Shown here piece by piece: positions 35,785 through 64,000 of a stretch of DNA of 64,000 bases (its first letter is position 1; each line of letters starts with the position of its first letter). The notes under the pieces are model-generated. The model ran no database searches. It saw only the letters and a program-made list of their open reading frames with translations, and was not told where the DNA came from. Where the stretch lies: the IMG/VR virus record IMGVR_UViG_3300032322_001765, positions 62,001-126,000 of that record; one strand, given 5' to 3'. Both the position numbers and the translations under genes were made by a program.

Positions 35785-36665
35785 TGCCATTAGATATAGG
35801 TCCTGGGATTACGATTGGCGGTGGTATTTCAATTACAACGCCTCCATCAGTCACAGCAGTTGATTATCTAGTTGTTGCTGGTGGTGGCGGTGGCGCAGCA
35901 GATGATGGCGGCGGGGGCGGCGCCGGCGGATTTAGAACAGGAGATTCATTTTCTGTAACACCAGAAACAACCTACTCAATTACTGTGGGCGGAGGAGGAT
36001 CCGGTGCACCAAGAGCAGATGCAGACAGCGCAACTAAAGGGTCAGATTCAATCTTTAGTACGATAACTTCTACTGGAGGTGGCGCCGGACATAAAGCTGG
36101 CGCGGCACCTTCAAAATCAAACGGGGGTTCCGGCGGAGGCGGCGGATATGATTTAGGTATAGGTGGTTTAGGAAATACTCCCTCTACATCTCCTAGTCAA
36201 GGTAATAATGGTGGTAATAATAATTATACAGGCGCGGGCGGTGGCGGTGGCGCAGGCAGTGCTGGTACGAATGGTCAAGGACCGAATCCTAATACGGAAA
36301 CTGCTGCTGGTAATGGTGGTGCAGGAGCAGCTTCTTCTATGTCAGGATCATCAGTAACATATGCTGGCGGAGGTGGAGGAGGTGGTAGATCATCTGCAGG
36401 CGGTACAGGTGGCACAGGAGGTGGAGGTAACGGTCAACGCAATGGACAAACCGGAAGTGCCGGTACAGCAAATACCGGAGGCGGTGGGGGTGGGTGCGGG
36501 GATGTCGGGACAGTCAGAAACTCATTCAGCGGCGGATCCGGAATAGTTATTATTCGTTACCCTGATTCATTTACGGCTGCAACAACTACAGGAAGCCCAA
36601 CATACACTGTTACAGGTGGCTATAGAATTTACACATTTACCGGCAATGGGTCAATAACTTTCTAA
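35784..36665 (+). CDS. Glycine-rich (polyglycine) adhesin-like protein
   Basis: Start moved to ATG 35784 (MPLDIGPGITIGGGISIT). Contains VDYLVVAGGGGG, repeated GGGGG runs, ANTGGGGGG and GGSGIVIIRY..YRIYTFTGNGSITF. Confidence 0.8.
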   Translation: MPLDIGPGITIGGGISITTPPSVTAVDYLVVAGGGGGAADDGGGGGAGGFRTGDSFSVTPETTYSITVGGGGSGAPRADADSATKGSDSIFSTITSTGGGAGHKAGAAPSKSNGGSGGGGGYDLGIGGLGNTPSTSPSQGNNGGNNNYTGAGGGGGAGSAGTNGQGPNPNTETAAGNGGAGAASSMSGSSVTYAGGGGGGGRSSAGGTGGTGGGGNGQRNGQTGSAGTANTGGGGGGCGDVGTVRNSFSGGSGIVIIRYPDSFTAATTTGSPTYTVTGGYRIYTFTGNGSITF

Positions 36666-39600: not shown

Positions 39601-39768
39601 ATTAATGATTTAGCAGGTACATTTGGTAGTAATGCATGTACTATAAACAGAAATGGACATAACATTCAAGGTGTTGCAGATGATTTAGTTGCAAATACGG
39701 CACAGGCTAGCTTTGGTTTAGTGTACAGTAATAGCACATATGGTTGGAAGATATTAGAGGTAGTATAA
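36697..39768 (+). CDS. Fibre protein (1023 aa) with C-terminal YxVDT..TLP..GW coupler domain
   Basis: MAITLLQPFNLD anchor, seven QPN(I/V)TS repeats, a knob module, two (F/Y)TGNG modules and the coupler domain shared with 29765. Confidence 0.85.
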   Translation: MAITLLQPFNLDTAGNYTFNTLTANIKTDNLMYANGSPYVFSGNPAGTNTQVQFNDANSFGASAAFTFNKSSNVLTISGNLTSTNANLGNLVTANFVTGTLTTGAQPNITSTGTLSSLTVTGLVIATANGVKTANIYDSTGTLTIETKYGNSAGDAGVYGNLTVGTSGTGNITAYNANLGNLVIGNFLQGTLTTQAQPNITSVGTLSSLSVTANVSAGNVLTNNLLYANGVAWSFGSTYSNTNVAAYLPTYTGNIAANYFIGNGATLTNLTGGNVTGQVANALIAGTVYTNAQPNITSVGTLASLTVSGNANVSTNLNVTGNALVSGNLTVQGNTNYINVDTLVVEDPIIELGGGPNGAPLTTNDGKDRGTLLHYYTTAPVDAFMGWDNSNGEFAFGSNVSLSSEVVTFNSFGNVRASYFIGNGSQLTGVVGSANYSTFAGTVLTNAQPNITSVGTLASLTVTGNLTAGNANLGNLVIANFFSGNGSLLTSITGGNVSGQVGNALIAGTVYTNAQPNITSVGTLSSLTVTANISSGNANLGNLVTSNYFVGDGSLLSSIAAGNITGQVANALIAGTVYTNAQPNITSVGTLTSTTLAANSNITMSGSLSQISGANLIDATYLTGTLTTAAQPNVTSLGTLTGLTVSGNLSFTGANAYFSNISNVKIPGGSANYVIITDGSGNLSWAAQTGGGGGGTPGGSNTQLQFNDGGSFAGTANVTYDKTTNTLSVTGNASFTGANVSLGNIANLKITGGSNGYFLSTDGAGNLSWTQESVSALNITVDDFTGNGVQSNFTLSTTPVSEDFTIVSLAGTFQPRTTYTVSGNVISFSSAPPNNAPIEVTTFAGYAATPAVYTTRTYTGNGSQTVFTVTSGSSVDSLLVTENGVLQVPTTDYTVAGASLTFTTAPSSNVAIQVRELPTSLGGAGGLTWNIANANATMSASNGYFVDTSAGAKTMTLPASASLGDTIRINDLAGTFGSNACTINRNGHNIQGVADDLVANTAQASFGLVYSNSTYGWKILEVV

Positions 39769-41099
39769 TGCCACAGAATTTAAAAAGTTTAGTTACACAA
39801 TCATTATATCCTAAAATTACAACAGTCACTACCGAAAGTGCTACTGCTGTTATACCAGCCGGCGGCGAAACAGTTACAGTTACAGGTAGTGGTTTTTTAA
39901 GTGGTGCAGTTGTTTGGATAAACAATAGCAATGTATCTACCACATTTACTAGCTCAACAACGTTAACTTTTACTTCTCCTGCACAAAGTGCTGGATTTTA
40001 TCAATTATTTGTATATAACACCGATGGGTCAGTTGCTACTAAACCAGGTGGATTAATTTATAATGCAGCTCCTGTTTGGTCAACTGCAAGTGGAGCGTTA
40101 CTTCCTCTTGTAACTAATGTTGCATATAGTACAACTTTAGTTGCTACAAGCGGAACAATAACATATTCAATAACTTCAGGAAGTTTGCCTTCAGGAATTT
40201 CATTAAATTCTAGTACTGGAGTAATATCGGGCACCTCTTCAGTCACTACCGGTACTTTTAGTTTTACTGTTGCGGCGACTAATGAATACAATCAAGTTAC
40301 AACAAGAAATTTTAGCATCACAGTATCAGCATTAATAGTAGAAACATTATTAGTAGCTGGTGGTGGAGCCGGCTCCGGTGGCGGCGGTGGAGCAGGTGGG
40401 TTATTATATTATGGATCTGAAACACCAAAAACACCTAACGGTAGTGCTTTAGGATTACAAACAGGTGTTACATACAGTATTACAGTGGGCGGTGGAGGCA
40501 CAAGTTCAAGTAATGGATCTAATAGTGTAATGTCAGGTACAAACTTTACAACATTAACCGCAGTAGGTGGCGGAGCCGGCGGTGGCGGCTCAAATGGCGG
40601 GAACGGTGGATCAGGAGGTGGTGCTCCGAGAATTATTCCAACTGGCATAGGATTAGGCACGACAGGGCAAGGTAATAACGGTGGAACAGGTGTTGATGCA
40701 AACAATGCTTCAGGTGGCGGTGGTGGAGCCGGCGCGGTTGGTGGTAATGCTGGCGGAGCCGGCGGTAATGGTGGTGCTGGATTAAATTATAGTATATCAG
40801 GATCCTCAGTAGGATACGCTGGTGGAGGAGGTGGTGGTGGTGCTAACGGCGGTGGTTCGGCCGCACAAGGGGGTGGCGCAGGTGCCAGTGGTGGCGCAGC
40901 CTCAGGCACTACAAACACAGGTGGAGGTGGTGGAGGTATTTACACTAATGGTCCGGGTGCCGGTGGTTCCGGAGTAGTAATATTACGATATTCTGACAGT
41001 CTAGCAGCAGCCACTAGTACAACAGGATCTCCAACATACACAGTGACAGGTGGCTACAGAATTTATAGGTTTACCGGCAACGGATCAATAACATTTTAA
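39768..41099 (+). CDS. IPT/TIG + Ig-like + glycine-rich adhesin
   Basis: Start moved to ATG 39768 (TAATG overlap; MPQNLKSLV). Contains PAGGETVTVTGSGF and YSITSGSLPSGISL, then a polyglycine domain with the same C-terminus as 35784 and 47509. Confidence 0.8.
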   Translation: MPQNLKSLVTQSLYPKITTVTTESATAVIPAGGETVTVTGSGFLSGAVVWINNSNVSTTFTSSTTLTFTSPAQSAGFYQLFVYNTDGSVATKPGGLIYNAAPVWSTASGALLPLVTNVAYSTTLVATSGTITYSITSGSLPSGISLNSSTGVISGTSSVTTGTFSFTVAATNEYNQVTTRNFSITVSALIVETLLVAGGGAGSGGGGGAGGLLYYGSETPKTPNGSALGLQTGVTYSITVGGGGTSSSNGSNSVMSGTNFTTLTAVGGGAGGGGSNGGNGGSGGGAPRIIPTGIGLGTTGQGNNGGTGVDANNASGGGGGAGAVGGNAGGAGGNGGAGLNYSISGSSVGYAGGGGGGGANGGGSAAQGGGAGASGGAASGTTNTGGGGGGIYTNGPGAGGSGVVILRYSDSLAAATSTTGSPTYTVTGGYRIYRFTGNGSITF

Positions 41100-47508: not shown

Positions 47509-48471
47509 ATGACTAGACAAAGAACAAATTATGGTATAACAGGTTCGGAACAGACTGTTACTCAAGGTTCAAAGAATGGCCTCTATACTATTGTTGATGC
47601 ACAAATAGCTCAAGGAGCTGGCAAGTGGCCAGCTCCTGGCATAGATGTAAACTATTTAGTAATTGCAGGTGGAGGCAGTGCAGGTAAGGGACAATCCGGC
47701 GGCGGCGGCGCCGGAGGATATAGATCAAACTTAATAGGTCAAGCTTCAGGTGGGGGTGCAAGCGCAGAAGCACCACTTATTGTAAGTTATAATACTACTT
47801 TTAATGTAACAGTTGGTGCAGGAGGTGCAGCGCAAACAACTTTAGACCTTCAAGGTAATAACGGAAGTGACTCAAGTTTTGGTAGTATAACTTCTACTGG
47901 AGGAGGCGGTGGCGGCGCATATGGAACTCCAGCTGGTAAAAATGGAGGCTCTGGTGGAGGACAGGGAAATAACACAGGAGCCACTGGAGGAAGTGGAACT
48001 TCAGGTCAGGGCTATAACGGCGGTAATGTAGCTGTTTATTCTTCGCCTTATCGAGGCGCAGGGGGCGGCGGTGCCGGCGCGGTAGGTGCCAATGGATATA
48101 CCGGTACTGGCGAGGGAGGTACCGGTGTAGCATCATCGATTACCGGAAGTTCAGTGACTAGAGCAGGTGGTGGAGGAGGAGGTATATTTGGTAGCAGTAC
48201 TCCTGCAGCGGGCGGCGCGGGTGGCGGCGGCGCCGGCACTGGCTCAGGTAACGGCGGCGATGGTAGTGCTAACACAGGCGGCGGCGGTGGAGGAACGACT
48301 TACCCAGGAGGAAACTCGGGCGCTGGCGGTTCTGGTGTTGTAATTATTCGTTATTCTGATACACATGCTAATGCCTCAGCAACTACAGGATCACCTACAT
48401 TATCTGTTACTGGTGGCTACAGAATCTATACTTTTACTGGTAACGGATCAATAACTTTTCCAGCCAGCTAA
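47509..48471 (+). CDS. Glycine-rich (polyglycine) adhesin-like protein
   Basis: Contains VNYLVIAGGG, polyglycine runs, ANTGGGGGG and GGSGVVIIRY..YRIYTFTGNGSITF. Confidence 0.8.
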   Translation: MTRQRTNYGITGSEQTVTQGSKNGLYTIVDAQIAQGAGKWPAPGIDVNYLVIAGGGSAGKGQSGGGGAGGYRSNLIGQASGGGASAEAPLIVSYNTTFNVTVGAGGAAQTTLDLQGNNGSDSSFGSITSTGGGGGGAYGTPAGKNGGSGGGQGNNTGATGGSGTSGQGYNGGNVAVYSSPYRGAGGGGAGAVGANGYTGTGEGGTGVASSITGSSVTRAGGGGGGIFGSSTPAAGGAGGGGAGTGSGNGGDGSANTGGGGGGTTYPGGNSGAGGSGVVIIRYSDTHANASATTGSPTLSVTGGYRIYTFTGNGSITFPAS

Positions 48472-48505: not shown

Positions 48506-49885
48506 ATGGCAGCAATAACAAAAATTACACCAATAGCGTTAGATGAAACAGCTAACTATACAGTTAATAATTTAACTGTAACATCTAACGTCAGTTTTGG
48601 TAACAGTAATTTAGGTAATTTATCAGTTGCTAATTTCTTTTCAGGCAATGGATCATTATTAACTTCACTTACAGGCGGTAATGTAACAGGACAAGTAGGT
48701 AATGCATTAATCGCTGGTACAGTGTACACTAATGCACAGCCAAATATTACAAGCGTTGGTACATTAAGTAGTCTAAGTGTAACTGCTAATGCAAGTGCTG
48801 GTAATATTTTAACAGATAACTTGTTATACGCTAATGGCACAGCATGGACTTTTGGTAGTGGATCATATTCAAATACAAATGTTGCTGCGTACTTACCTAC
48901 GTATACTGGTAATTTTACTGCTGGTAATGTTTCAGGCGCTAATTTAATCAGTGGTAATTTCTTAACCGGTACATTAACTACAGCAGCACAACCGAATATT
49001 ACTAGTGTTGGTACATTATCATCACTAACAGTTACTGGACTAATTACTGCAACAGCAAATGGTGTTAAAGCTGCAAATATTTACGATAGTACCGGTACAT
49101 TAACAATTGAAACAAAATACGGTAACTTAGCGGGTGATGCAGGAGTATATGGCAATTTAACTGTTGGTACAAGTGGTACCGGAAATATTACAGCGTATAA
49201 TGCTAACTTAGGTAATTTAGTTATTGGTAACTTCTTGCAAGGAACATTAACAACAGCACTACAACCAAATATTACTTCAGTTGGCACATTGTCTAATCTT
49301 ACAGTATCAGGTAATGTCTCATTGACTGGAGCAAATGTTTATGTAAGCAACGTAGCTAATTTAAAAATACCCGGCGGAACTGCTAATTATGTATTATCAA
49401 CTGATGGGACAGGTAACTTAAGTTGGGCAGCGCAAACTGGTGGCGGAGGTGGCGGCACACCTGGTGGTAGTAATACACAACTACAGTTTAACAATTCAAA
49501 TGCGTTTGGCGGTACAACTGGTTTAACATTTGATTCAGTTAATAATAGATTATCGATTACTAATTACACATTACCAACAAACGCATTAGGTAATATAAGT
49601 GGTAATACAACCATAAATTTAAATGCTGGTATGTATGTTACTGCTACTGTAACTGGTTCGGTAACTTGGACTTTTAGTAATTCAGCAACTTCGTCAAATG
49701 CTTCAGGCTTTATTTTAGAATTAACAAATGGTGGTAGCAGTACTCAAATTTGGCCTACTTCAGTTAGATGGCCAAGTGGTGTAGCACCTGCTCTCACAGT
49801 AACAGGTGTCGATTTACTTGCTTTTGTTACTGACGATAATGGCACTAATTGGCGTGGTGTCGCTTCAATGATTGATAGTAAATAA
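48506..49885 (+). CDS. Fibre protein with C-terminal WPxSVRWPxGxAP..D..F.T.D.G..W domain
   Basis: MAAITKITPIALD anchor and three QPNITS repeats. The C-terminal domain is of a type widespread at phage fibre ends. Confidence 0.8.
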   Translation: MAAITKITPIALDETANYTVNNLTVTSNVSFGNSNLGNLSVANFFSGNGSLLTSLTGGNVTGQVGNALIAGTVYTNAQPNITSVGTLSSLSVTANASAGNILTDNLLYANGTAWTFGSGSYSNTNVAAYLPTYTGNFTAGNVSGANLISGNFLTGTLTTAAQPNITSVGTLSSLTVTGLITATANGVKAANIYDSTGTLTIETKYGNLAGDAGVYGNLTVGTSGTGNITAYNANLGNLVIGNFLQGTLTTALQPNITSVGTLSNLTVSGNVSLTGANVYVSNVANLKIPGGTANYVLSTDGTGNLSWAAQTGGGGGGTPGGSNTQLQFNNSNAFGGTTGLTFDSVNNRLSITNYTLPTNALGNISGNTTINLNAGMYVTATVTGSVTWTFSNSATSSNASGFILELTNGGSSTQIWPTSVRWPSGVAPALTVTGVDLLAFVTDDNGTNWRGVASMIDSK

Positions 49886-49889
49886 TATT

Positions 49890-50378
49890 ATGGCAAATTT
49901 TGCATTAGTTGAAAATAACGTAATTATAGAAAGACATGATTTACTTCCAACAACATGGAGAAATGTTAGTGGATTAAGTTTGTTGAAAGATGATGAAGAA
50001 TTATTAAATAATTTAGGTTGGTATACAGTTACTAAAGTATATCCTAATTATGATATATCAACTCAGTATATCGACGGATATGAGTATTCTTTTGTTGATA
50101 ATAAAGTCTTAGAAACACCTATACTTAAAAACATTGAGATTGTTGTAATTTCTGAGGAAGAACGTTTTGCAACTTTATTAGCAGAATTAAGACTTAAAAG
50201 AGATAGCTTGTTAATTGAATCTGATTGGACACAATTAGCAGACGTACAAGCAAGTCACACAAATGATTGGAAAACAGCTTGGGCTAATTATAGGCAACAA
50301 CTTCGTGATTTACCAAACCTATGCATAGTGGGTCAGATAAATATATATGAAGTTATATGGCCTACTAAACCCGAGTAA
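49890..50378 (+). CDS. Phage tail/fibre assembly chaperone
   Basis: Start moved to ATG 49890 (MANFALVENN). The C-terminal RxxRDxLLxESDWTQLADV..W..YRQQLRDLP..WPxKP is the typical tail-assembly-chaperone signature. Confidence 0.85.
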   Translation: MANFALVENNVIIERHDLLPTTWRNVSGLSLLKDDEELLNNLGWYTVTKVYPNYDISTQYIDGYEYSFVDNKVLETPILKNIEIVVISEEERFATLLAELRLKRDSLLIESDWTQLADVQASHTNDWKTAWANYRQQLRDLPNLCIVGQINIYEVIWPTKPE

Positions 50379-50380
50379 AC

Positions 50381-53300
50381 ATGTTTTTCAAAGAATTTTT
50401 ATACAAAGCACAAACTCAAACTTTCACCTCCAATAAGCTTTTTACTTGGGGATTAGGCACATCTGGTCAATTAGGCTCTTACGGTGAATCAAATTTATCA
50501 CTAGTACAAGCAAGTGCCGGACAATCACACGTGCTTGCTATTACTAGTGATAGTAGATTGTTATCGTGGGGAGTTAACAGTGATGGTCAATTGGGCGATG
50601 GCACTACTATCAATAAATCTAATCCTGTACAGGTAGGTCAACCTGGTTGGAAAAAAGTAGCAGCAGGATTACTTCATAGTGTTGCAATTAGAAGTGACGG
50701 AACATTATTTTCATGGGGCTCAAATAGCGTTGGTCAATTAGGATTAAATTTAGGAACAGCGGCTACAGCTCGCCGGTCTAATCCAACACAAATTGGTTCA
50801 TTAGCAAACTGGATAGATATAAGTGGTAAAGCAACTACAACAATAGCATTAAATGAAGCTAGAGAACTGTATGCTTGGGGAAATAATAACTTAGGCCAAA
50901 TAGGTGTTAACGACACAATCAATAGATCAAGCCCCGTACAAATTGGAATAGGATTAAGTTGGTATAAAGTTTCTGTTGGTAGTCATGTTATGGGTGTTAC
51001 AGTGACTGGTGAACTATATGGTTGGGGAGCTAATGGGGCTGGTCAATTAGGAATAAATGCAACAAATAATAGAAGTAGCCCAACTCTAGTTGCTAATTCT
51101 GGTTATACTGATGTAAGCATAGGTGAAGGCCATACATTAGGATTAGCGTCAGGTAATTTATTGTTTGCTTGGGGAAATAACCTTGAAGGACAATTGGGTG
51201 ACGGTACAACTATATTAAAATCTAGTCCAGTACAAATAGGTTCAAGTTCTTTTACTTTTATTAGTGCAGCTTCTAGATTTAGTCAAGCAATAAGATTAGA
51301 TGGGGGATTGTTTGCTTGGGGATTAAACACAAGTGGTCAAATTGGAACTAATAATCAAATAGGTAGGTCAAGCCCAGTACAAGTAGGAACGAGTAGTTGG
51401 TCGCTAGTGGCAAGTAGTTTAGTGAGTGGTTGGGTTATAGGAACCACTTCTGACAAAACTGCATATGGATGGGGGGCGAACGGTTCAGGACAATTAGGTA
51501 ATAATACTACCATTACACGATCAAGCCCGACTTTAGTTGCAAGTTCAATTGTTGGTAATTATAGTGTGCCAATACAAGTAGGGACACTTTCATGGAATGC
51601 AATTTCAACTGGGGGTACACATACAATTGCATTAAGAAGTGATAATTTATTATTTGCATGGGGTTTAAACACTTCAGGCCAATTAGGTGACAATACAGCG
51701 ATAAGCAAGTCAAGCCCAGTGCAGATAGGTACAAGTAGTTGGACAGCAGTAACAGCAGGTGAAGCTGATAGTTCTTTTGCCATTAGAAGTGACAATACAT
51801 TATGGACTTGGGGTAACGTTACAACAAACTTAACTGGTGGAAATATATTAACAGAAAGTTGGCAACAGGTAACCAATAATGCAAACAGTTCAATTGGATT
51901 AAGAGCAGACGGTACATTATGGACATGGGGAGAAAATAGTTTTGGTCAAATTGGTAATAATACCACAATTAATAGATCAAGCCCTGTACAAATTGCAAGT
52001 GATAAGAGTTGGTTAAAATTAGGTGAAAATAACAATGTAAATAATGCGGTTGCGGCAATAGACTCAAATTATAAACTTTGGGTATGGGGTCGCAATAACA
52101 CTGGTCAACTAGCCACAGGTGATACGATTAATAGATCAAGTCCTGTATTAGTAATGAGTGATAAAAGCTGGAGTATGGTATCAGCAAGTAAAGGTATTAC
52201 TACTGATGGTAAACTTTGGAGTTGGGGAGCAGGTGCTACCGGTTTAATTGGAGACAACACCACCGTTGATAAATCAAGCCCAGTGCAGTTAAGTGTTGGT
52301 ACAAGTTTTACATTGGTTTCCGGAGCTTCAGACTCTAATCGTCATACATTTGCTATAAGCACAACTGGATTGTTGTATGGTTGGGGATTTAATAACACAG
52401 GACAATTAGGTTTAGGTAATACACTAAACAGATCCCAACCTACTTTATTGGCCTCCCCGTTCGACACGTTTTCGTGGAATTTCGTTAGTGTTGGCGGCAC
52501 TGATGGTACTGGCTCAACAGGTGGCCATACATTAGCTTTAAGAAATGATAATACTTTATATGTTTGGGGATTAAACAACGTAGGACAATTAGGTAATAAT
52601 ACTACTATCAACCGAAGCTCACCATTACAAGTATCATTTGTTAATATTCCACTAAGTTGGGCTACAGTGGCAGCTGCTGCTTCAAGATCAACTGCTTTAG
52701 ATTTTGATGGAAAATTATGGGGTTGGGGTATTAATACGACCTACGGCGCAGTTGGTGACTCTACAACAGTTAACAGATCATCCCCCGTAATATTAACAAG
52801 CACTGGTGTTACTTTTGCAAAAATTACGTCAGGATATTTTCACAGTAATGGAATAAGAGATGATGGATATTTATATGCATGGGGCGCAAATAATTTAGGA
52901 AACTTAGGAAATAATACAACAATTAATAGATCCTCACCGGCACTAATAAGTTCTATTCCAACAAACTTATCAAGTCCAGTGCAACTAGGTGTAGGTAAAT
53001 CAAATTGGAGTGCTATCCATTCTGGAACTTCAACACATGCAGCAATCGATGCGACAGGCGCGTTATACATTTGGGGAAGTAATGCGACAGGTCAATTAGG
53101 AAATAATAGTGTTTTTACTCGAACAGGATTAAGAGTACTTGACAATAATAGTTGGAATAGTGTCAGTGTTGGTGCAAGTCATGTGTTAGCCATACGAAAT
53201 AATAATCAATTGTATGCATGGGGCGGTAATGCAAGTTTTCAAATTGGCGATAATTCCAGTATTAATAAATCAAGTCCGATTCTCATTGATTCGGCTAGCT

Positions 53301-56300
53301 GGCTAAGTGTAAGTGCAGGTATTAACCACTCTCTTGCAATTAAATCCGGGGGAGGTTTATATGCATGGGGTAGTGGTTTATTTGGTCAAACCGGTATTAT
53401 TACAGACATTTATTCTTGGACACAAATAAATGCTGGTACAAACTTTGTTTTAGGTGTAAGACAAGATAGTACATTATGGGGTTATGGACTAAACACTAGT
53501 GGTCAACTAGGAGATAGCACTGCCGCTACAAAATCTAGCCCCACTCAAGTAGGTACGACTAGTTGGAGTAAAATTAGTGCAGGAGGCTCAAATGCACTTG
53601 GTATCACTATAGATGGTAAATTATTTTCTTGGGGTTCTGGATCAACATTTCAACTCGGTGATGGCACAACAATAAACAAATCTAGTCCAGTACAAATAGG
53701 AACCAGTAGCTGGTCACAAATTACTACAGGTACAGCACATAGTTTAGCTATTGACATAAATGGCAGATTATTTGGTTGGGGTACATCTACAGCATTAAAT
53801 GCTAGCACAGCTCCATTTAGTTGGACAGTTGTATCTGAAAATACATCACATGTAGCAGCAGTTCGAAGTGACGGATTGTTGTTTGTATGGGGTCTCAATA
53901 GTTCAGGACAAGTTGGAGACAATACAACTATTAATAAATCAAGTCCAGTACAAATAGGTACAAGTAGTTGGTTAACTGTAAGTAGTGGTGTCGATCATAC
54001 ATTAGCTATAACAAGCGATTATAGATTATTTGCCTGGGGCGGTAACACAGGTTTCCAACTAGGTGATAACACTACTATAAGTAAATCAAGTCCGGTATTA
54101 TTGTCAGGTCCTAGTTGGACAACGGTAGTCGCTGCAAATAGTTATAGTATGGCATTAAAATCTAATAATACATTATGGGCGTGGGGTTTAGGAACTTCAG
54201 GTCAATTAGGTACACTAACTGAACCTAAGTCATGGATAGAATTAAGTGCAGGCAATAGTACAAGTTTAGCGATCCGCAGTGATAATACCTTATGGGGATG
54301 GGGATTAAACACTAGTTTTCAAATTGGAAATGGCGCAAGTGTAACACAATCTAGTCCAGTACAAGTAGATAGTTCATTGAGTTGGATAAAAGTAAGCTCA
54401 GGCAATAATCATGGCTTAGCAATTACTAATACAGGAGTTTTATATGGCTGGGGAACAAATGCTCAAGGTCAAGTCGGGAATAATACATCAGTAAATCGTA
54501 GTTTACCTACCCTAGTTGATTCATCCGGTAGTTGGAGTGTAGTGAGTGCAGGTAACAGTTTCTCATTGGGAATAAAAGAAAATAAATTATACACTTGGGG
54601 ACAAAATAGCTTAGGTCAGTTAGGACAGGGTGATACTATAACAAGATTAAGCCCAACTCAAGTAGGATTGAACAATTGGACTGTAATAACTTCAAGCGAA
54701 ACTAATAATTATGCAGGTGCGATTGATAGTAGTAATAGATTATTTTTATGGGGAGTAAACACTAATTACCAATTAGGTGATGGCACAACAACAAATAGAA
54801 ATAGCCCTGTTGCAGTATTTGCTACTGGTACAAGTAGTTATGTTCAAGTAAGTGTAGGAGCAAGTCATACATTAGCAGTTCAAAGTGATGGCACATTGTG
54901 GGCCTGGGGGTCAAATACAAATTACATATTAGGATTAGGTGATACGAATATACGTTCAATACCAACACAAATGGGTTCAAGTAGTTGGACAAGTGTAAGT
55001 GCAGGAACAGATCATAGTATGGCAATCAAGTCTGACGGCACACTTTGGGGTTGGGGATTTAATCTTTTTGGACAAGTTGGTCTTGCAACAACTGTGTATT
55101 CTTGGACTCAAGTTGCAAACACTGGCCTCACAACACACGCTATTAGAAGTGATGGTTTACTATTTGGCTGGGGTTTAAATACTTCAGGGGAAATAGGGGA
55201 TAACTCGATTATTAATAAATCGAGTCCTGTACAAGTAGGAATCAAAACATGGAAAAAAGTTTATAATTTTACGGCTCTAGTTGGAAATCTTGCTTCTGTA
55301 TTAGCCATTGACAATAACGACAATTTGTTTGCTTGGGGCAATAACACATCCGGAAATTTAGGGGACAATACAGTAATTAGTAGATCCTCACCTGTTGCGG
55401 TGGTGATTAAAGGAACAGGTAGCTATACACAAGTCTTTGTTGGTCCGGCTACAGTTGCAATACAAAATGATGGAACACTTTGGTCATGGGGTGCTGGATC
55501 CTTTGTCGGAGACAACACAACCATTAGTAGATCAAGTCCAGTGCAGATAGGTTCTAGTACATGGTCTGCAGTAGGAGGTGCTTTATCCACTATTGCTGCT
55601 ATAGATGCAACTGGTAGATTATTTACTTGGGGTAACCAATCAGCATCGGGTAGTGGCTCGTTAGGCACAAACGATCTTATAAATAGATCAAGTCCTACAC
55701 TAGTTGCAGGCGCACCAGGTGCATTTAGTTGGACAAGTGTAAGTTCTGGTGGGGCTAATCATGTTTTAGCTATTCGTGAAAATGGAGCTGCGTACGGAAC
55801 GGGTTTAAATGCTCAAGGTCAGTTAGGTGACAACACTGCAACTAGCAAGTCAACTTTTACTTTAGTTTCTGGGACAACAAGTTTTACTCAAGTAAGGTGT
55901 GGATTTAGTTTTACAATAGCATCAGCAAGTGACGGCACGCTTTGGGGTTGGGGGAACAATGATTGGGGGCAACTTACTACTACTTTACCAATTGCTGCTA
56001 ACAGATCAAATCCGGTTCAAATAGTAGCGCCAGGCCCAACAGTGTATTCTACTGGTCAATATAATTTAGCCACAATCTATTCTAATGGTTTATTGTATAA
56101 TCAAGGATACAATTTAAATGGGATGCTAGGAGATGGAACAACAACTAGTAAGTCGCTACCTGTTCAAATCGGAAACAATCCGATCATAAATATATCAGTA
56201 CCCGTACAAATTGGTACCGGCAGCTGGAATCAAGTAAATGCAGGTACTCAATATACATTAGCAAGAGATACTAATAATGTTCTTTATGCTTGGGGTCAGG

Positions 56301-56326
56301 ATACATCAGGACAATTAGGTTTTTAA
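50381..56326 (+). CDS. Giant RCC1/BLIP-II-type beta-propeller repeat protein, part 1 (1981 aa, ~40 blades)
   Basis: Repeats of SW..VSAG..H.LAI..DG.L(F/Y/W).WG.N..GQLG..TT.N(R/K)SSPVQ(I/V)G. Ends in mid-repeat (GQLGF*). Confidence 0.9.
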   Translation: MFFKEFLYKAQTQTFTSNKLFTWGLGTSGQLGSYGESNLSLVQASAGQSHVLAITSDSRLLSWGVNSDGQLGDGTTINKSNPVQVGQPGWKKVAAGLLHSVAIRSDGTLFSWGSNSVGQLGLNLGTAATARRSNPTQIGSLANWIDISGKATTTIALNEARELYAWGNNNLGQIGVNDTINRSSPVQIGIGLSWYKVSVGSHVMGVTVTGELYGWGANGAGQLGINATNNRSSPTLVANSGYTDVSIGEGHTLGLASGNLLFAWGNNLEGQLGDGTTILKSSPVQIGSSSFTFISAASRFSQAIRLDGGLFAWGLNTSGQIGTNNQIGRSSPVQVGTSSWSLVASSLVSGWVIGTTSDKTAYGWGANGSGQLGNNTTITRSSPTLVASSIVGNYSVPIQVGTLSWNAISTGGTHTIALRSDNLLFAWGLNTSGQLGDNTAISKSSPVQIGTSSWTAVTAGEADSSFAIRSDNTLWTWGNVTTNLTGGNILTESWQQVTNNANSSIGLRADGTLWTWGENSFGQIGNNTTINRSSPVQIASDKSWLKLGENNNVNNAVAAIDSNYKLWVWGRNNTGQLATGDTINRSSPVLVMSDKSWSMVSASKGITTDGKLWSWGAGATGLIGDNTTVDKSSPVQLSVGTSFTLVSGASDSNRHTFAISTTGLLYGWGFNNTGQLGLGNTLNRSQPTLLASPFDTFSWNFVSVGGTDGTGSTGGHTLALRNDNTLYVWGLNNVGQLGNNTTINRSSPLQVSFVNIPLSWATVAAAASRSTALDFDGKLWGWGINTTYGAVGDSTTVNRSSPVILTSTGVTFAKITSGYFHSNGIRDDGYLYAWGANNLGNLGNNTTINRSSPALISSIPTNLSSPVQLGVGKSNWSAIHSGTSTHAAIDATGALYIWGSNATGQLGNNSVFTRTGLRVLDNNSWNSVSVGASHVLAIRNNNQLYAWGGNASFQIGDNSSINKSSPILIDSASWLSVSAGINHSLAIKSGGGLYAWGSGLFGQTGIITDIYSWTQINAGTNFVLGVRQDSTLWGYGLNTSGQLGDSTAATKSSPTQVGTTSWSKISAGGSNALGITIDGKLFSWGSGSTFQLGDGTTINKSSPVQIGTSSWSQITTGTAHSLAIDINGRLFGWGTSTALNASTAPFSWTVVSENTSHVAAVRSDGLLFVWGLNSSGQVGDNTTINKSSPVQIGTSSWLTVSSGVDHTLAITSDYRLFAWGGNTGFQLGDNTTISKSSPVLLSGPSWTTVVAANSYSMALKSNNTLWAWGLGTSGQLGTLTEPKSWIELSAGNSTSLAIRSDNTLWGWGLNTSFQIGNGASVTQSSPVQVDSSLSWIKVSSGNNHGLAITNTGVLYGWGTNAQGQVGNNTSVNRSLPTLVDSSGSWSVVSAGNSFSLGIKENKLYTWGQNSLGQLGQGDTITRLSPTQVGLNNWTVITSSETNNYAGAIDSSNRLFLWGVNTNYQLGDGTTTNRNSPVAVFATGTSSYVQVSVGASHTLAVQSDGTLWAWGSNTNYILGLGDTNIRSIPTQMGSSSWTSVSAGTDHSMAIKSDGTLWGWGFNLFGQVGLATTVYSWTQVANTGLTTHAIRSDGLLFGWGLNTSGEIGDNSIINKSSPVQVGIKTWKKVYNFTALVGNLASVLAIDNNDNLFAWGNNTSGNLGDNTVISRSSPVAVVIKGTGSYTQVFVGPATVAIQNDGTLWSWGAGSFVGDNTTISRSSPVQIGSSTWSAVGGALSTIAAIDATGRLFTWGNQSASGSGSLGTNDLINRSSPTLVAGAPGAFSWTSVSSGGANHVLAIRENGAAYGTGLNAQGQLGDNTATSKSTFTLVSGTTSFTQVRCGFSFTIASASDGTLWGWGNNDWGQLTTTLPIAANRSNPVQIVAPGPTVYSTGQYNLATIYSNGLLYNQGYNLNGMLGDGTTTSKSLPVQIGNNPIINISVPVQIGTGSWNQVNAGTQYTLARDTNNVLYAWGQDTSGQLGF

Positions 56327-59300
56327 ATGCCAACGAATTCACCAGTTTTATTAGGAAACAAATTACCATATAATTTACCAGAGCCTCAAAAAGTTGACAA
56401 CAATAGTTGGACACAAGTTAGTGCATTTAACGACTTTACAGTAGGGTTGAGGTCTAACAGTATCTTGTATGCATGGGGCACAAATAATTCTTACCAAATT
56501 GGTGATGGTACTACACTAAACAAATCAACACCAACTCAAATTTCAAATAGTAGTTTCTTAGTGGTAAGTGCGGGCTTTGATCATAGTGCTGCGATTACCA
56601 CTAACAATACACTATTTGTTTGGGGAAACAGTGCTAGTACTTTTGTTCAAACTATTAATTTCTCATGGACTAAAGTTGCAAGTTCAGGTAACCACACATT
56701 AGCTATTCGTAATGATAATACATTATGGACTTGGGGATTAAACACCGCAGGTCAATTAGGTGACGGTACAACTATTAATAAATCAAGTCCAGTACAAATT
56801 GGTTCAGGTACATGGAATGATATTAGTGCAGCAGTAAGTCATTCTGTAGCAATTGACAGTGATTACAAACTTTATGTTTGGGGTCAAAACAATGCCGGAC
56901 AAATAGGCGACAATACATCGATTAACAAATCTAGTCCCGTTCAAATAGGTTCGAATAGTTGGCTACAAGTTGCATCTGGTAATAGTTATACTGTTTCAAT
57001 AAACTCATTAAATGAAATGTTTGCGTGGGGTTTAAACACAAGTTATCAACTTGGGGATAGAACAGTTATTAACAAATCTAGCCCTGTACAAATAGGTTCT
57101 ACTTTTAGTTGGTCAAGTGTCAGTGCAGGCGTAGATCATAGTTTAGCAATAACAACCGATAATCAATTATATATTTGGGGTAATCCAGCTGGTGCAGGTA
57201 TACAAGAACCAACTACAATATATTCATGGACGCAAGTAACCGCAGGTAATATTTACACAACTGCTATTAGAAGTGATGGCAGTCTTTGGACATGGGGTAG
57301 GAACACTGAAGGACAATTAGGTCAAAACAATGTTATACTTCAAAGTAGTCCTGTACAGGTAGGTAATAGTAGTTACACACAAGTATCAGGCAAATGGAGT
57401 CATACAAGTGCAATTAAAGCTGACAGTACAATAATAGGATACGGTAGCAATACATACGGGGAGCTTGGTGATGGCACAACTATTGCAAAATCAAATCCAG
57501 TTACATTATCTTCTAGCTTTACAAACACAAGCTGGACTTCAGTTAGTGCAAGTGTAAATCACACAGCAGCAATTAGAAATGATGGTAGAATTTATATTTG
57601 GGGTTTAAATACATCAGGTCAATTAGGTGACAATACTGCAATAAGCAAATCAAATCCTGTTAGTTTAGCAAGCCCATTTGACACAAGTAGTTGGACACAA
57701 GTAGATTTAGGAAGAGACTTCGCCCTTGCAAGAAGATTAGATGGTAAATTATATGCATGGGGATTTAATGATTTAGGACAATTGGGAATTGTAAATTCTA
57801 CTTTCCCAATTGGTGGCGATACTTTAAACAGAAGCAATCCAGTATTAATCAGTGATAGTAGTTGGATTCAAGTAAGTGCAGGCTTTGATCATAGTTTAGC
57901 TATACGCTCGGACAATACATTGTGGACATGGGGTAGCAGTGTGGCCATAGGATTAGTGACAGAACCAATGTCATGGCTCGCTGTGTCAGGTGGTGCAACA
58001 CACACATTAGGTATAAGAGATAATGGCACGTTATGGACATGGGGTACTAATGATCAAGGTCAATTAGGCAATTCAACAACTGTTATACGCTTAAGCCCAG
58101 TTCAAATCGGATTAACTAGATGGGCAAGTGTAAGTGCAGGTAGTAGTTATTCTCACGCTATTGATCAAGCTGGTTTATTATATGCATGGGGTTTAAATTC
58201 AAGTGGACAGTTAGGCGATAATTCATCGATTAATAAATCAAGCCCAGTACAGATAGGATCTAGCAGCTGGATAGAAGTAACTGATGGGGTTAATCATACA
58301 CTAGCAATTGATGCAGATGGTAGATTATATGGATGGGGTCAATTTACTAGTGGTCAAACAGGTGTATACGACGAAATTTATTCTTGGACACAAATCACTA
58401 GTGGATTGGGATTACGCACAGATGGTACCTTATGGGCTTGGGGGCAATTAACAGGTGATGGTACTACAATTATTAGGTCTAGTCCAGTACAGATAGGGTC
58501 AAGTGATTGGTCCTCAATAGCGCCTATATTTTCTATGATTGATCCAAAAGCTGCATTAAAAACAAACGGTACGCTTTGGATGTGGGGAACTAATGCACTA
58601 GGACAATTAGGACAAAATGATACCATTAATAGAAGTTCACCTGTACAGGTTGCAGGAAGTTGGAATCAAATAAGTGTGCAATCTGGTCATGCTGCTGCAA
58701 GAAATGTAAGCAATATTATCTATACTTGGGGCAAAAATGAAGCAGGCCAATTAGGTGATGGCACTACAATCGATAAATCAAGTCCTGTTTTATTGAGTGG
58801 TGCGTTTGGTACTACTAGTTGGACATCTGTTAGTGTTGGCTGGTCTCATACCGCAGCTTTAAGAAATGATAACATAATTTATATTTGGGGCTGGAACAAT
58901 CAGGGGCAGTTAGGTACTGGTCTTACCACAAGTAGATCCAATCCAGTAACTTTAGACGGAGCATTTGCTACAAGTAGTTTTGTAGCTGTAAGCAGTGGTG
59001 CTTTACACACACTTGCCGTCAGATCCGATAGTAGACTAGTAGCATGGGGATATAATTTAGAAGGTTCTTTGGGTGACAATACAACTATTAATAAGTCAAC
59101 ACCTGTAGTAATTGGAACTAGTAGTTGGTCAGTAGTTACCGCTGCACGAACTAATAATCTAGCAGTCACTACAACAGGCACACTTTGGTTTTGGGGTGCT
59201 GATGGAGGTAGTGGCTCATCAGCTCAAAATGCCACTATTAACAGAAGCGCGCCAACACAAATAGGAGCATTAACTAATTGGGCATCAGCCGGTGTAGTTT

Positions 59301-62300: not shown

Positions 62301-63480
62301 CTGGTCAATTAGGATTGGGTGATACGATACTAAGGTCTAGTCCTGTATTAGTGGGTAATAATAGTTGGTCGGCAATTTCAGCGGCTATTGGTGGAAATAA
62401 TAGCGCAGGTATTGCAAGCGACGGTAAATTATTTACTTGGGGTAATAATAATACGGGACAATTAGGTGATGGCACAACAATAAACAAATCGAGTCCAGTA
62501 CAGATTTCCTCAGGATCAAGCTTTAGTCTTGTTGCAGCAGGCCCAGGATTCCTGTTGGCTGCATCTACTAATTATGCATTATTTACTTCAGGAGGTAATA
62601 GTGTTGGACAATTAGGTGATGGCACAACAATAAACAAATCTACTCCAGTACAAATAACTGATCCGTCAGTTCAAAGTTGGATTTTTATAAGTGCAGGAAC
62701 TAGCTATAGTGGTGGCATAGATAATTTAGGAAAGTTATATACTTGGGGAACAAATTTCCTTGGTATTTTAGGTCATGGCGACACAATTAATCGTTCAAAA
62801 CCAACTATAGTATCAGGATCGACTAGTTGGTCTAAAGTAAGTGCAGGTGGTGTTAACACATTAGGTATTACTAATTTAGGAGCACTATATGCATGGGGAC
62901 AGAATAACGTAGGACAAATAGGTGATGGCACTACTATAAACAAATCTAGCCCAGTACAAATAGGTTCAAGTAGTTGGTCCGCAGTTGCAGCTAGTGATAG
63001 TGTATCTATGGCTATTAGGTCAGATAATACTCTATGGACTTGGGGGCATAATAGTGTAGGACAATTGGGTATAGGTCTTACTACAAATAGATCAAGTCCG
63101 GTGCAAGTTGTAGCTGGCGCACAATGGTCTTCAATAGCTAGTTCTGGTAATAATACTATGGTAGCTATCTCAATAGCTACTGGAACTAGTAATAAACTTT
63201 ACTTGTGGGGCTTCAATGCCTCAGGACAATTAGGTACAGGAGACACAGTAAATCGTAGTAGCCCCACATTACTAGCAGGAACTACAGGAACTGTTATACC
63301 AACTAAAATTTTAAATTATCAAAGCTTTAGCCAAGTAAGCACTGGTATATCTTACACTATAGCTAAAAGAGCTAATGACAATGTTTTAATGGGATGGGGT
63401 ATTAATACTTCTGGACAGTTAGGAGATAATACCGCAACACAAGCAAGAAGGAGTAATCCTACATTAATTGGATATAGAAC
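50438..63480 (+). repeat. RCC1-like repeat array (~88 blades over two ORFs)
   Basis: Counted by hand from the xWG..GQLG cores: about 40 in ORF 50381 and about 48 in ORF 56327. Confidence 0.88.
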
Positions 63481-64000
63481 TTTTGTAGACGCATCAGAAA
63501 ATAATATTACCTCAGTAACATTCACTGGCTCACCAAAAAATGTTGATTTTAGTCCTTTTGCAAATCAGCCATATAATACTGTCACTAGTGGTGGTAGCAC
63601 ACAATTTAGTGGATTAGGTGATGTCATTAACTGTGGCACAAACTCAGTATTTGCATTTGGTACAGGTCCGTTCTGTATTGAGTTTTGGTGCTATAATAAT
63701 ATATTGAAAGCTGTAGCAGCAGTAACAACCAATCCATCTGTCACAAGTGTTACAGATTCATTCATTGTGGGATGGGACGCCGCTGGTTCATATAACGTAG
63801 TGGTAGGAAATACTACATTTGCTTCTTCTCCGGGATTTATAAAGACTAATGTTTGGCAACATATTGTTTGTTGTCGTGATAGTTCCAATAATGTGGCTGT
63901 GTTTATTGATGGTGTGCGAGGATCTCCCGGCGTCGTTGCTAGCAACTTAGTCAGAACAACATTAGGAATAGGAGATTTCCCTACAACCCCATCTCAAAAT
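56327..64000 (+). CDS. Giant RCC1-repeat protein, part 2 (>2558 aa, ~48 blades, then a LamG domain; runs off window)
   Basis: Not in the ORF track because it has no stop in the window. The ATG directly follows the TAA of part 1 in the same frame. I translated it through to 64000 without meeting a stop. From ~63482 it reads FVDASENN..FSPF..FAFGTGPFCIEFW..WQHIVCCRD..VFIDG (LamG). Confidence 0.88.
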   Translation, partial: MPTNSPVLLGNKLPYNLPEPQKVDNNSWTQVSAFNDFTVGLRSNSILYAWGTNNSYQIGDGTTLNKSTPTQISNSSFLVVSAGFDHSAAITTNNTLFVWGNSASTFVQTINFSWTKVASSGNHTLAIRNDNTLWTWGLNTAGQLGDGTTINKSSPVQIGSGTWNDISAAVSHSVAIDSDYKLYVWGQNNAGQIGDNTSINKSSPVQIGSNSWLQVASGNSYTVSINSLNEMFAWGLNTSYQLGDRTVINKSSPVQIGSTFSWSSVSAGVDHSLAITTDNQLYIWGNPAGAGIQEPTTIYSWTQVTAGNIYTTAIRSDGSLWTWGRNTEGQLGQNNVILQSSPVQVGNSSYTQVSGKWSHTSAIKADSTIIGYGSNTYGELGDGTTIAKSNPVTLSSSFTNTSWTSVSASVNHTAAIRNDGRIYIWGLNTSGQLGDNTAISKSNPVSLASPFDTSSWTQVDLGRDFALARRLDGKLYAWGFNDLGQLGIVNSTFPIGGDTLNRSNPVLISDSSWIQVSAGFDHSLAIRSDNTLWTWGSSVAIGLVTEPMSWLAVSGGATHTLGIRDNGTLWTWGTNDQGQLGNSTTVIRLSPVQIGLTRWASVSAGSSYSHAIDQAGLLYAWGLNSSGQLGDNSSINKSSPVQIGSSSWIEVTDGVNHTLAIDADGRLYGWGQFTSGQTGVYDEIYSWTQITSGLGLRTDGTLWAWGQLTGDGTTIIRSSPVQIGSSDWSSIAPIFSMIDPKAALKTNGTLWMWGTNALGQLGQNDTINRSSPVQVAGSWNQISVQSGHAAARNVSNIIYTWGKNEAGQLGDGTTIDKSSPVLLSGAFGTTSWTSVSVGWSHTAALRNDNIIYIWGWNNQGQLGTGLTTSRSNPVTLDGAFATSSFVAVSSGALHTLAVRSDSRLVAWGYNLEGSLGDNTTINKSTPVVIGTSSWSVVTAARTNNLAVTTTGTLWFWGADGGSGSSAQNATINRSAPTQIGALTNWASAGVVSAINNLGVAFVWGSGGSANTSNTYLLNTTVDASSPVQVGGFRWPPTKYYSPQQVGTSSFSLVSAGSSYSMGINAEDLLYGWGVNNSGQQADGTTVAKSSPVQITTSSYISVSAGFDHVLAIASNGTLWTWGNSAAIGLVVQPQSWSEISSGSSHTLAIRSDGALFAWGIGTSGQLGNTLAISNSSPVQVGTSSWSQVKAGTNVSLAIDTNNRLFGWGLNTSAQLGIGVITNRSSPVLITSGSWIGLAAGGTHTFAIDSTNKLYGWGNNDSGQIIPYGSYFPTGYSPVSAGGGFFAAIRTSDSGLLLWGRNNFGQLGQGNTIDRSNPIQLGSNSWKQVAAGTSFISAIRSDDTLWTWGLNTSGQLGDNTSISKSSPVQVAGSWLSISGGATHALGVKIDNTLWSWGSNDVGQLGDSTVVNKSSPVQIGTRSWSSVNAGNSYSLAIDTTGIVYGWGWNTSGQLGDGTTTNRNSPVLLASPFNTTSFSQVTAGFSHSLGFTTSGLLYSWGGNSVGELGLGLITSRSNPTQITQYSGLLPQNGSWSFIYAGQQISTAINNNNLYVWGSGASGQLGLGDTINRSIPVQTGIGYSWKAAALEVATNLGAGYLRSDNSVWVTGNNTFGNLGNSTTVNRSAPVIVGSTSISTPVQVGTSSWSQISAGASYSAGIDSLGKLYTWGLNNTYQLGNNTTVDRNDVINQLTNSSWTSVSTGLNHVLAIASNNSLHAWGSAAAVGLSNVTALSWSTIASGGQSSHLAAIRSDGALFTWGLNTNGQLGDGTTINKSSPTQISGTISWTSVAVDLSNTMAIRLGGTLFVWGGNASGQLGLSDTINRSNPVLLDYNSWSQISVNTSHTAGIRSNQLYVWGNNVSGQIGDNTTINKSSPVQVTGSWNSVSAGAQYTIGINNSSLLFVWGVNAAFQLGTGNTVSRSSPVQIATGTSYSIISAGPTHAVAIDTTSKLWTWGQQSSVGIDVNSWTQVSIGNQFVLAIRNDGRLFAWGVNSSGQLGLGDTILRSSPVLVGNNSWSAISAAIGGNNSAGIASDGKLFTWGNNNTGQLGDGTTINKSSPVQISSGSSFSLVAAGPGFLLAASTNYALFTSGGNSVGQLGDGTTINKSTPVQITDPSVQSWIFISAGTSYSGGIDNLGKLYTWGTNFLGILGHGDTINRSKPTIVSGSTSWSKVSAGGVNTLGITNLGALYAWGQNNVGQIGDGTTINKSSPVQIGSSSWSAVAASDSVSMAIRSDNTLWTWGHNSVGQLGIGLTTNRSSPVQVVAGAQWSSIASSGNNTMVAISIATGTSNKLYLWGFNASGQLGTGDTVNRSSPTLLAGTTGTVIPTKILNYQSFSQVSTGISYTIAKRANDNVLMGWGINTSGQLGDNTATQARRSNPTLIGYRTFVDASENNITSVTFTGSPKNVDFSPFANQPYNTVTSGGSTQFSGLGDVINCGTNSVFAFGTGPFCIEFWCYNNILKAVAAVTTNPSVTSVTDSFIVGWDAAGSYNVVVGNTTFASSPGFIKTNVWQHIVCCRDSSNNVAVFIDGVRGSPGVVASNLVRTTLGIGDFPTTPSQN

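Follow-up and report, generated by a model that had tools for sequence, protein, structure and literature searches.

How should two adjacent giant phage genes be interpreted when they are separated only by a TAA stop followed directly by an ATG start, and when this boundary falls inside a repeat unit? We addressed this question for a window of 64,000 nucleotides (positions 62,001 to 126,000 of IMG/VR record IMGVR_UViG_3300032322_001765). The initial annotation proposed that a single propeller blade is split across the junction, and preferred an evolved gene fission in which the two chains complete each other. The evidence supports this reading, to which we assign a probability of approximately 0.75. 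The physical interlocking of the two proteins is, however, inferred from sequence grammar and comparison rather than from a co-fold or an experiment.

The junction and its two reading frames

The sequence reads as initially described. Positions 56291-56329 end in TTA GGT TTT TAA ATG. ORF1 terminates in LYAWGQDTSGQLGF followed by the stop, and ORF2 begins at the next codon, in the same frame, with MPTNSPVLLGNKLPYNLPEPQKVDNNSW. The linker between GQLG and SP is two positions shorter than the consensus DGTTINKS (six positions counting the stop, against eight). ORF2 runs past the end of the window and is intact for 4525 codons, ending in TAA (window-equivalent position 69904). All 23 ORFs of 150 aa or more in the window also end in TAA.

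Both ORFs are RCC1 repeat arrays that score above the Pfam thresholds, with RCC1, RCC1_2 and WD40_RLD hits: PF00415 scores 94.7 and 198 bits (cut-off 21.7), PF13540 scores 82 and 164 bits (cut-off 22) and PF25390 scores 273.7 bits (cut-off 150) for the ORF2 N-terminus. The features are listed below, with propellers numbered from the outermost, P0; assignments to propellers are those of the repeat grammar described in a later section.

50381-56326 (+), ORF1, 1981 aa: an RCC1-repeat protein with 39 blades plus an N-terminal lone D strand; three propellers are complete within it (P1, P2, P6) and four are still open at its C-terminus (P0, P3, P4, P5)
50429-50452 (+), N-terminal lone D strand (SNKLFTWG) of P0, whose A, B and C partner strands are the last residues of ORF2, beyond the window
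53417-53512 (+), opening three-strand blade of P3 (ORF1 aa 1013-1044); P3 has 3 blades in ORF1 and 4 in ORF2
53822-53917 (+), opening three-strand blade of P4 (ORF1 aa 1148-1179); P4 has 3 blades in ORF1 and 4 in ORF2
54233-54328 (+), opening three-strand blade (B, C, D, no A strand) of P5 (ORF1 aa 1285-1316), which the ORF2 N-terminus is predicted to complete
55103-56179 (+), P6 (ORF1 aa 1575-1933), a complete seven-blade unit inserted between blades 6 and 7 of P5
56225-56323 (+), strands B, C, D and the GQLG hairpin of the seventh blade of P5 (aa 1949-1980), plus the terminal Phe
56317-56320 (+), SD-like AGGT formed by the Leu-Gly codons (TTA GGT) of the GQLG motif, six nt upstream of the ATG
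56324-56326 (+), TAA stop of ORF1, conserved in relatives
56327-56329 (+), ATG start of ORF2, adjacent to the stop and in frame, conserved in relatives
56330-56359 (+), closing A strand (PTNSPVLLGN) predicted to complete blade 1 of P5 in trans
56360-56503 (+), second A strand (KLPYNLPEPQKVDNNS) plus strands B, C, D and the hairpin (ORF2 aa 12-59), which together form the fourth blade of P4
56327-64000 (+), ORF2 as far as the window end (full length 4525 aa): 8 complete propellers, the missing parts of P5, P4, P3 and P0, and five Laminin_G_3 insertions

The propellers initially annotated as opening at 54230 and 53819 correspond to our P5 and P4. One detail differs. The initial annotation took KLPYNLPEPQKVDNNS as the closer of a blade opened in ORF1. 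This is probably wrong: by the grammar it is the first (A) strand of a new blade. In structural terms, the break lies in the loop between strand D of the seventh blade and the closing strand that completes blade 1 of P5.

The AGGT cited initially as support for the fission is simply part of the conserved GQLG codons and, on its own, is weak evidence. Its AGG lies at -10 to -8. Other genes in the window carry AGG, AAGG or AGGAG elements ending about 8-10 nt upstream of their start codons, and equivalent G-rich elements lie upstream of the start in the relatives.

Conservation of the break

The single in-frame stop lies in the middle of a repeat unit and could, in principle, be a recent nonsense mutation or an assembly or sequencing error in what is truly a single gene. 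The stop is present in two separate metagenome assemblies: IMGVR_UViG_3300032322_001765 and IMGVR_UViG_3300033571_018919 are identical over 21.2 kb and both carry TAA. These two contigs are the same strain and are therefore independent assemblies but not independent lineages. However, five further, diverged lineages (L050, L051, L052, L053 and L054) keep GQ[LI]G-x(1-2)-TAA|ATG in frame. The two that were scored, L050 and L051, match the first 394 residues of ORF2 at 57% and 53% identity, and their ORF2 N-termini have drifted (MPINSP.., MPAISP.., MRSLP.., MPRSLP..). Synonymous sites are saturated (dS 1.4-1.9), with dN/dS of 0.25-0.44 on both sides of the stop, indicating purifying selection. 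In addition, a Met codon, which never occurs in the repeat consensus at that position, follows the stop in every in-frame lineage. A recent nonsense mutation or assembly error is excluded by these comparative data.

More distant lineages break the same loop with other types of junction: an ATGA overlap (L055, L015, L017 and L038), TAATG (L021) or a 25-nt spacer (L027). What is conserved is the break, not the frame. We examined 120 giant RCC1 proteins and in none of these did the ORF2 N-terminal motif occur internally; no fused allele was therefore seen.

These observations also bear on programmed read-through of the stop, or its suppression by an ochre suppressor tRNA encoded elsewhere in the roughly 220-300-kb genome, either of which would produce a single chain of about 6,507 aa, the ATG being incidental or giving a second product. 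In its favour, the stop and the downstream ORF stay in the same frame with zero spacing in six lineages, the architecture is that of a single chain, and jumbo phages may often carry tRNAs. However, the ATG is conserved immediately after the stop in all six, and five other lineages have ORF2 in another reading frame and one has the spacer, so that the family as a whole makes two chains; the overlapping or spaced junctions cannot be fused by read-through. Since TAA ends every ORF of 150 aa or more here, an efficient ochre suppressor would extend every protein. There is no stable RNA structure at the junction (z = +0.85) and no tRNA within the window, the only part of the genome scanned. Read-through is unlikely.

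Predicted nesting of propellers across the two genes

Linker lengths between repeats fall into separate classes (3-9, 14-25, 28-37 and 241-267 aa). In our repeat grammar, a short repeat opens a propeller and a double-A-strand repeat closes it. A last-in-first-out parse of ORF1 and ORF2 gives 14 of 14 closures at exactly seven blades, while none of 200,000 shuffles gave all sevens (maximum 5). The outermost propeller is closed by the N-terminal D strand of ORF1 together with the C-terminal A, B and C strands of ORF2, which form one blade. ORF1 has 6 openers and 3 closers, and ORF2 has 8 openers and 11 closers. The blade count is 39 + 65 + 1 composite = 105 = 15x7, and is a multiple of seven only for the two ORFs together. 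The grammar is our own construct. The parse of the two ORFs in the window is automatic and clean, but several orthologue parses needed manual reading or contain ambiguous linkers.

With this proviso, the orthologues replicate the parse. ORF1 of L051 (read by hand) and the orthologue P0120 leave the same open stack at the junction (6/3/3/7 blades), and the ORF2 orthologues P0032, P0014 and P0005 deliver exactly the blades needed to bring P4, P3 and P0 to seven. The same open stack is found in orthologues that differ by whole inserted propellers.

The unit from a short repeat to a closing strand equals a whole UVR8-like propeller. ORF1 aa 44-387 aligns end to end with UVR8 crystal chains (residues 12-367 of 373, E = 4e-39). 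The AF2 model of such a unit, including its closing strand (pLDDT above 90), superposes on UVR8 with TM 0.90-0.92 and rmsd 1.5-2.2 Å over about 370 columns. Its two ends therefore lie side by side, as a domain insertion requires. In contrast, the ORF1-only model of P5 superposes well over only about 296 columns, roughly six blades, at rmsd 2.5-2.8 Å, and shows only three strands in its opening blade. AF2 with shallow alignments left the outer propellers unassembled (pLDDT below 50 for the returning segments), and the nested topology of these propellers is inferred.

The best explanation is that the TAA-ATG junction is a real, old and selected gene boundary inside what is structurally one protein architecture: 15 seven-bladed propellers, each inserted into an inter-blade loop of another, with a main trunk nine propellers deep and side branches. 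The chain is cut after the last D strand and GQLG hairpin of the side-branch propeller P5. As a result, ORF2 residues 2-11, which have the same form as the other 13 closing strands and whose motif is conserved in orthologues, would supply in trans the innermost strand that the first blade of P5, a propeller otherwise wholly in ORF1, lacks. ORF2 would then supply 4 of the 7 blades of P4, 4 of the 7 blades of P3, the last full blade of P0 and the A, B and C strands of the blade whose D strand is the N-terminus of ORF1.

Translation is most likely coupled, although this is inferred from geometry only: the ribosome that terminates at TAA would re-initiate at the abutting ATG, helped by the SD-like AGG. 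The ORF2 N-terminus would then emerge next to the freshly made ORF1 C-terminus and the two chains would assemble 1:1 by strand and blade complementation. No direct structural or biochemical evidence shows that the two chains bind. Folding three propellers from two chains, with up to about 3,800 residues between outgoing and returning blades, is mechanistically demanding and has no direct precedent. The product is most likely a virion fibre or adhesin decorated with lectin-like LamG domains. This role is inferred: tail-fibre-like and tail-fibre-assembly-like genes lie directly upstream, and the window also holds portal, protease and major capsid genes.

Alternatively, the two genes could simply be neighbouring paralogous RCC1 fibre genes whose products fold and act independently. 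Short repeats would then be tolerated three-stranded blades, long repeats would carry a spare strand, and the grammar would reflect duplication history and not structure. Tandem giant RCC1 genes are indeed common in related contigs, many showing long runs of ordinary repeats with no short or long units, and the unassembled outer propellers in the AF2 models are also compatible with this view. We consider it improbable in view of the seven-blade closures, the joint blade total, the half-blades at the far ends of the pair, the shared open stack in orthologues and the end-to-end match of the unit with a complete solved propeller.

A more speculative possibility, which we regard as doubtful, is that the break is an assembly device and not only a fission. 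Since the closing strand and returning blades of ORF2 are supplied in trans, they need not all go to the same ORF1 molecule. The pair could then polymerise into chains, rings or a lattice on the virion (a domain-swapped propeller polymer), and the recursive nesting would be a previously undescribed way to build a rigid branched fibre from a single repeat type.

Comparison with known systems

The repeats belong to the same family as the RCC1-like domain (RLD) seven-bladed propellers of UVR8, RCC1, HERC1/2 and RPGR. The outermost propeller starts with a lone D strand and ends with A, B and C strands, which appears to be the closure of human RCC1, and RPGR RCC1-like domain chains align from ORF1 residue 19-20. 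Known RLDs are single or linearly tandem domains in one chain; here 15 are predicted to be inserted into one another and spread over two polypeptides, with LamG domains inserted in blade loops.

Open propellers completed in trans are known (Sec13 with Nup145C, Sec31 or Sec16, and Seh1 with Nup85). As in these cases, a propeller that is incomplete in one chain would be completed by a partner chain. Those are WD40 propellers in which one blade is donated by an unrelated helical protein. Here the fold is RCC1, the donors are themselves propeller pieces, one closure involves a single strand, three propellers are split 3+4, 3+4 and 6+1 between the chains, and the genes are adjacent and apparently coupled in translation. 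In chaperone-usher pili, an N-terminal strand of the next subunit probably provides a similar donor-strand complementation, although the fold is Ig-like, no chaperone or usher is evident here, and complementation would be between two specific partners and not a homopolymer.

The geometry of the junction is the classical one for translationally coupled gene pairs (ATGA, TAATG, TAAATG), and all three variants occur among the relatives. Such pairs usually separate complete domains or proteins, while here the boundary falls inside a domain, so that neither product is structurally complete.

Very long arrays of RCC1 repeats have been described in Oscillospiraceae (bioRxiv 10.1101/2023.11.21.568195), and a related, Rak2-like jumbo phage, phAPEC6, is reported to encode eleven RCC1-like proteins (PMC7247149), which were suggested to organise DNA and not to act as fibres. 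Neither paper describes nesting, closing-strand grammar or split genes.

If the inference holds, this is a natural obligate two-chain propeller assembly in which one strand and eleven blades cross the gene boundary inside a 6,506-residue architecture. It would be an extreme test case for protein folding and co-translational assembly and a natural template for split-propeller engineering, and would make testable how jumbo phages build very large LamG-decorated fibres and how whole propeller modules are gained and lost without breaking the fold. It would also imply that hundreds of giant 'RCC1 family' phage genes in metagenomes are probably halves of one structure: among the 120 giant RCC1 proteins sampled, 35 start with an A strand and 21 end right after the GQLG hairpin.

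The junction and its conservation

The window represents the structural region of an uncultured jumbo myophage. It carries portal, prohead protease and major capsid genes and has a GC content of 37.6%. The capsid protein is 65-68% identical to those of Vibrio phage 2.275.O, PA5oct and Rak2-like phages. The features relevant to the junction are:

50381-56326: ORF1 (1981 aa), which ends ...LYAWGQDTSGQLGF
56317-56320: an SD-like AGGT
56324-56329: TAA ATG, the end of ORF1 and the start of ORF2

ORF2 begins at the next codon in the same frame with MPTNSPVLLGNKLPYNLPEPQKVDNNSW and runs off the window. By stitching two additional loci (L001 and L049) it was followed to a TAA after 4525 codons. Both ORFs are RCC1 repeat arrays and ORF2 later carries Laminin_G_3 (LamG) domains. 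All 23 ORFs of 150 aa or more (window 847-56326), as well as ORF2, end in TAA, and no TAG or TGA terminates a long ORF. The initial annotation had described the sequence at the junction correctly, including the SD-like AGGT and a linker two positions short.

To determine whether the stop is real, an exact-pattern scan was performed with NNN in place of the stop. This identified two IMG/VR contigs from different metagenomes. Both carry TAA and they are identical over 21.2 kb; they are the same strain in two assemblies. Megablast of the junction region against GenBank phages gave no match and cultured phages carry only weak RCC1 matches, so no isolate was available for comparison. A metagenome scan with the ORF2 N-terminus revealed two diverged relatives, L050 and L051, with 57% and 53% identity over the first 394 residues. 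Both include ...GQLG[LF] TAA ATG CCA... in frame. Between these lineages synonymous sites are saturated (dS 1.4-1.9) and dN/dS is 0.25-0.44 both upstream and downstream of the stop. A protein search with the ORF2 N-terminus returned ORF2 itself as a called 4525-aa protein, together with orthologues that start at the same Met (MP.[NS]SP..LGN.LP...) and ORF1-type proteins of 2623-6698 aa that end ...WGQD..GQLG[FLI]. The DNA of three further ORF2-type proteins shows the upstream gene ending at the base before their ATG. A recent nonsense mutation (pseudogene) or an assembly error is therefore excluded.

More distant contigs with tandem giant RCC1 genes cut the same loop, directly after GQ[LI]G(D), but with other junctions. 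These are an ATGA overlap in contigs L055, L015, L017 and L038 (for example, GQLGDGT-stop / MSINTNRSS..), a TAATG overlap in L021 and a 25-nt spacer in L027. It is the break, and not the frame, that is conserved. All three junction types are classical stop-start coupling geometries. In the five overlap junctions ORF2 is in another reading frame, and L027 has an intervening spacer, so read-through cannot fuse the genes there. There is no stable RNA structure at the junction (z = +0.85) and no tRNA in the window. Read-through of the stop to give a single chain is unlikely.

In a sample of 120 giant RCC1 proteins, 35 begin with an A strand and 21 end right after the GQLG hairpin. Fused alleles were sought among proteins of 2,220-7,065 aa. 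The ORF2 N-terminal motif never occurred internally in the 120 best hits and no fused allele was seen, although fusions longer than 7,065 aa would have been missed. In all lineages the Gly codons of GQ[LI]G(D) place an AGG/GGAG element about 7-10 nt upstream of the start. This may explain why this loop is the place where the gene is cut. A different arrangement is found in other viral contigs (L028 5246-7549; L033, L034 and L035), which carry single-propeller RCC1 genes of about 380 aa laid end to end in the same frame with a few non-coding codons between the stop and the next ATG. Each of these products starts with its own N-terminal segment, so they look like complete units.

A repeat grammar spanning both ORFs

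A first regular-expression parse of the repeats proved too noisy and was replaced by HMMs built from the window's own repeats. One covers strands B-C-D plus the WG...GQLG hairpin and the other covers the A strand (..SSPVQIG). The linkers between successive B-C-D elements fall into separate classes: 3-9 aa, with no A strand (short repeat, S); 14-25 aa, with one A strand (full repeat, F); 28-37 aa, with two A strands (long repeat, L); and 241-267 aa, with one A strand followed by a LamG domain. We read S as opening a new propeller with a three-stranded blade. We read L as a first A strand that closes the most recently opened propeller and a second A strand that starts the next blade of its parent.

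Under this reading, all 14 closures in ORF1+ORF2 occur at exactly seven blades, and with the improved HMM the parse is fully automatic, although the pieces were analysed apart and joined only as token lists. None of 200,000 shuffles of the same tokens gave all sevens; the best gave 5 of 14. The outermost propeller (P0) starts with a lone D strand at the N-terminus of ORF1 (SNKLFTWG) and ends with A, B and C strands at the very C-terminus of ORF2 (..SSPTQVTGTYSEVSAGNSFTGARAIIYPTSQ-stop). The balance holds only for the pair. ORF1 has 6 openers and 3 closers whereas ORF2 has 8 openers and 11 closers. Blade counts are 39 and 65 plus the composite blade, which gives 105 = 15x7. Independent folding of the two products is possible but poorly compatible with these counts and is considered unlikely.

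At the TAA four propellers are open:

P0: 6 of its blades
P3: 3 blades
P4: 3 blades
P5: all 7 B-C-D sets but no closing strand

By this grammar, ORF2 residues 2-11 are that closing strand and residues 12-59 are the fourth blade of P4. Much later, ORF2 returns to complete P4 (around aa 3893-4225), P3 (to around aa 4434) and P0. The initial annotation had favoured an evolved gene fission with the two chains locking together. This is supported, although the physical interlock is not yet shown, with one correction: the KLPYNLPEPQKVDNNS segment, which had been taken to close a blade opened in ORF1, probably starts a new blade. The LamG domains, of about 200 aa, are inserted between strand A and strand B of single blades (window ~63473-64000 and onward; L001 from 9686). 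There are five in ORF2, all on the 'returning' half of the chain and each in the seventh blade of a trunk propeller.

Structural models and comparison with orthologues

The unit from an S repeat to a closing strand is a whole propeller. ORF1 aa 44-387 aligns end to end with UVR8 crystal chains (residues 12-367 of 373, E = 4e-39). AF2 models were generated with alignments of about 36-39 rows. The model of ORF2 aa 1725-2660 has a mean pLDDT of 64: the nested unit, including its closing strand, is excellent (above 90) while the outer propeller and LamG score below 50. The nested part superposes on UVR8 with TM 0.90-0.92 and rmsd 1.5-2.2 A over about 370 columns. A propeller whose two ends lie in the same blade is exactly what can be inserted into a loop of another domain. 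The ORF1-only model of P5 with its nested propeller P6 (aa 1278-1981) has a mean pLDDT of 73. It includes six confident contiguous blades (the first six score above 95) and a three-stranded first blade, but P6 is poor. It superposes well on solved RLDs over only about 296 columns. Foldseek gave only whole-unit superpositions, and the nested closures of the outer propellers and the inter-chain contacts therefore remain inferred.

Orthologues differ by whole inserted propeller modules (L051 2906-9997, which is the ORF1 orthologue of that contig, and proteins P0002, P0015 and P0035). The L051 ORF1, read by hand, has the same layout as the window's ORF1 plus one extra complete S+6F+closing-strand module inserted inside P5. 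It still leaves 6/3/3/7 open at the junction. Protein P0120 gives the same stack automatically. When seeded with that stack, the ORF2 orthologues P0032, P0014 and P0005 bring P4, P3 and P0 to exactly seven. L017 (ATGA type) also places the break before a closing strand, following a nested seven-blade unit. Whole modules are thus gained and lost, with ORF1 ranging from 1981 to 6698 aa, while the topology at the gene boundary stays constant. Automatic application of the grammar to distant homologues is unreliable because of undetected blades and loop insertions. Many distant relatives have long runs of ordinary repeats and no nesting signature, so the architecture is not universal in the family.

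Proposed assembly and genomic neighbourhood

We propose that the pair is an old gene fission, or a repeatedly selected one, inside a single recursive domain-insertion architecture. In this scheme, a ribosome terminating at TAA re-initiates at the abutting ATG. The nascent ORF2 N-terminus would lie next to the ORF1 C-terminus and insert as the missing innermost strand of the first blade of P5. ORF2 would then add blades to P4, build the distal propellers P7-P14 with their LamG insertions and, on its way back, complete P4, P3 and P0. The closest precedent for a propeller completed by another chain is Sec13 with Nup145C or Sec31, and Seh1 with Nup85 (PMC3115789). Propellers complemented in trans and gene fission with coupling are already known; here they would be embedded in an unusually deep nested architecture. 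Literature searches for nested or split RCC1 propellers in phages found nothing relevant. Giant RCC1-only proteins are known from Oscillospiraceae, and a paper on the related phage phAPEC6 noted eleven RCC1-like proteins and speculated on a DNA-organising role (PMC7247149).

The neighbourhood argues for a virion fibre or adhesin, with tail-fibre-like and tail-fibre-assembly-like genes directly upstream and other giant LamG/Ig-like proteins. Features of the window include:

12568-20496: a 2642-aa ORF in the structural module with no Pfam match at E <= 1e-5
24671-29752 and 30231-35393: two paralogous proteins of about 1,700 aa, each with a He_PIG Ig-like domain and six Laminin_G_3 domains, separated by a 153-aa ORF (29765-30226)
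35763-36665, 39744-41099 and 47509-48471: three paralogues of phrog_2295 (unknown function), which alternate with tail-fibre-like genes
49872-50378: a 168-aa TTG-start ORF matching tail-fibre-assembly/chaperone PHROGs

The alternation of the phrog_2295 paralogues with tail-fibre-like genes suggests a repeated fibre cassette. The 168-aa ORF overlaps the preceding tail-fibre-like gene and ends 2 nt before the ORF1 ATG. Beyond the window (from ~16170 of the stitched L001+L049), a gene of about 571-581 aa follows ORF2 in the window phage and in four relatives (L052-L055), so synteny is conserved.
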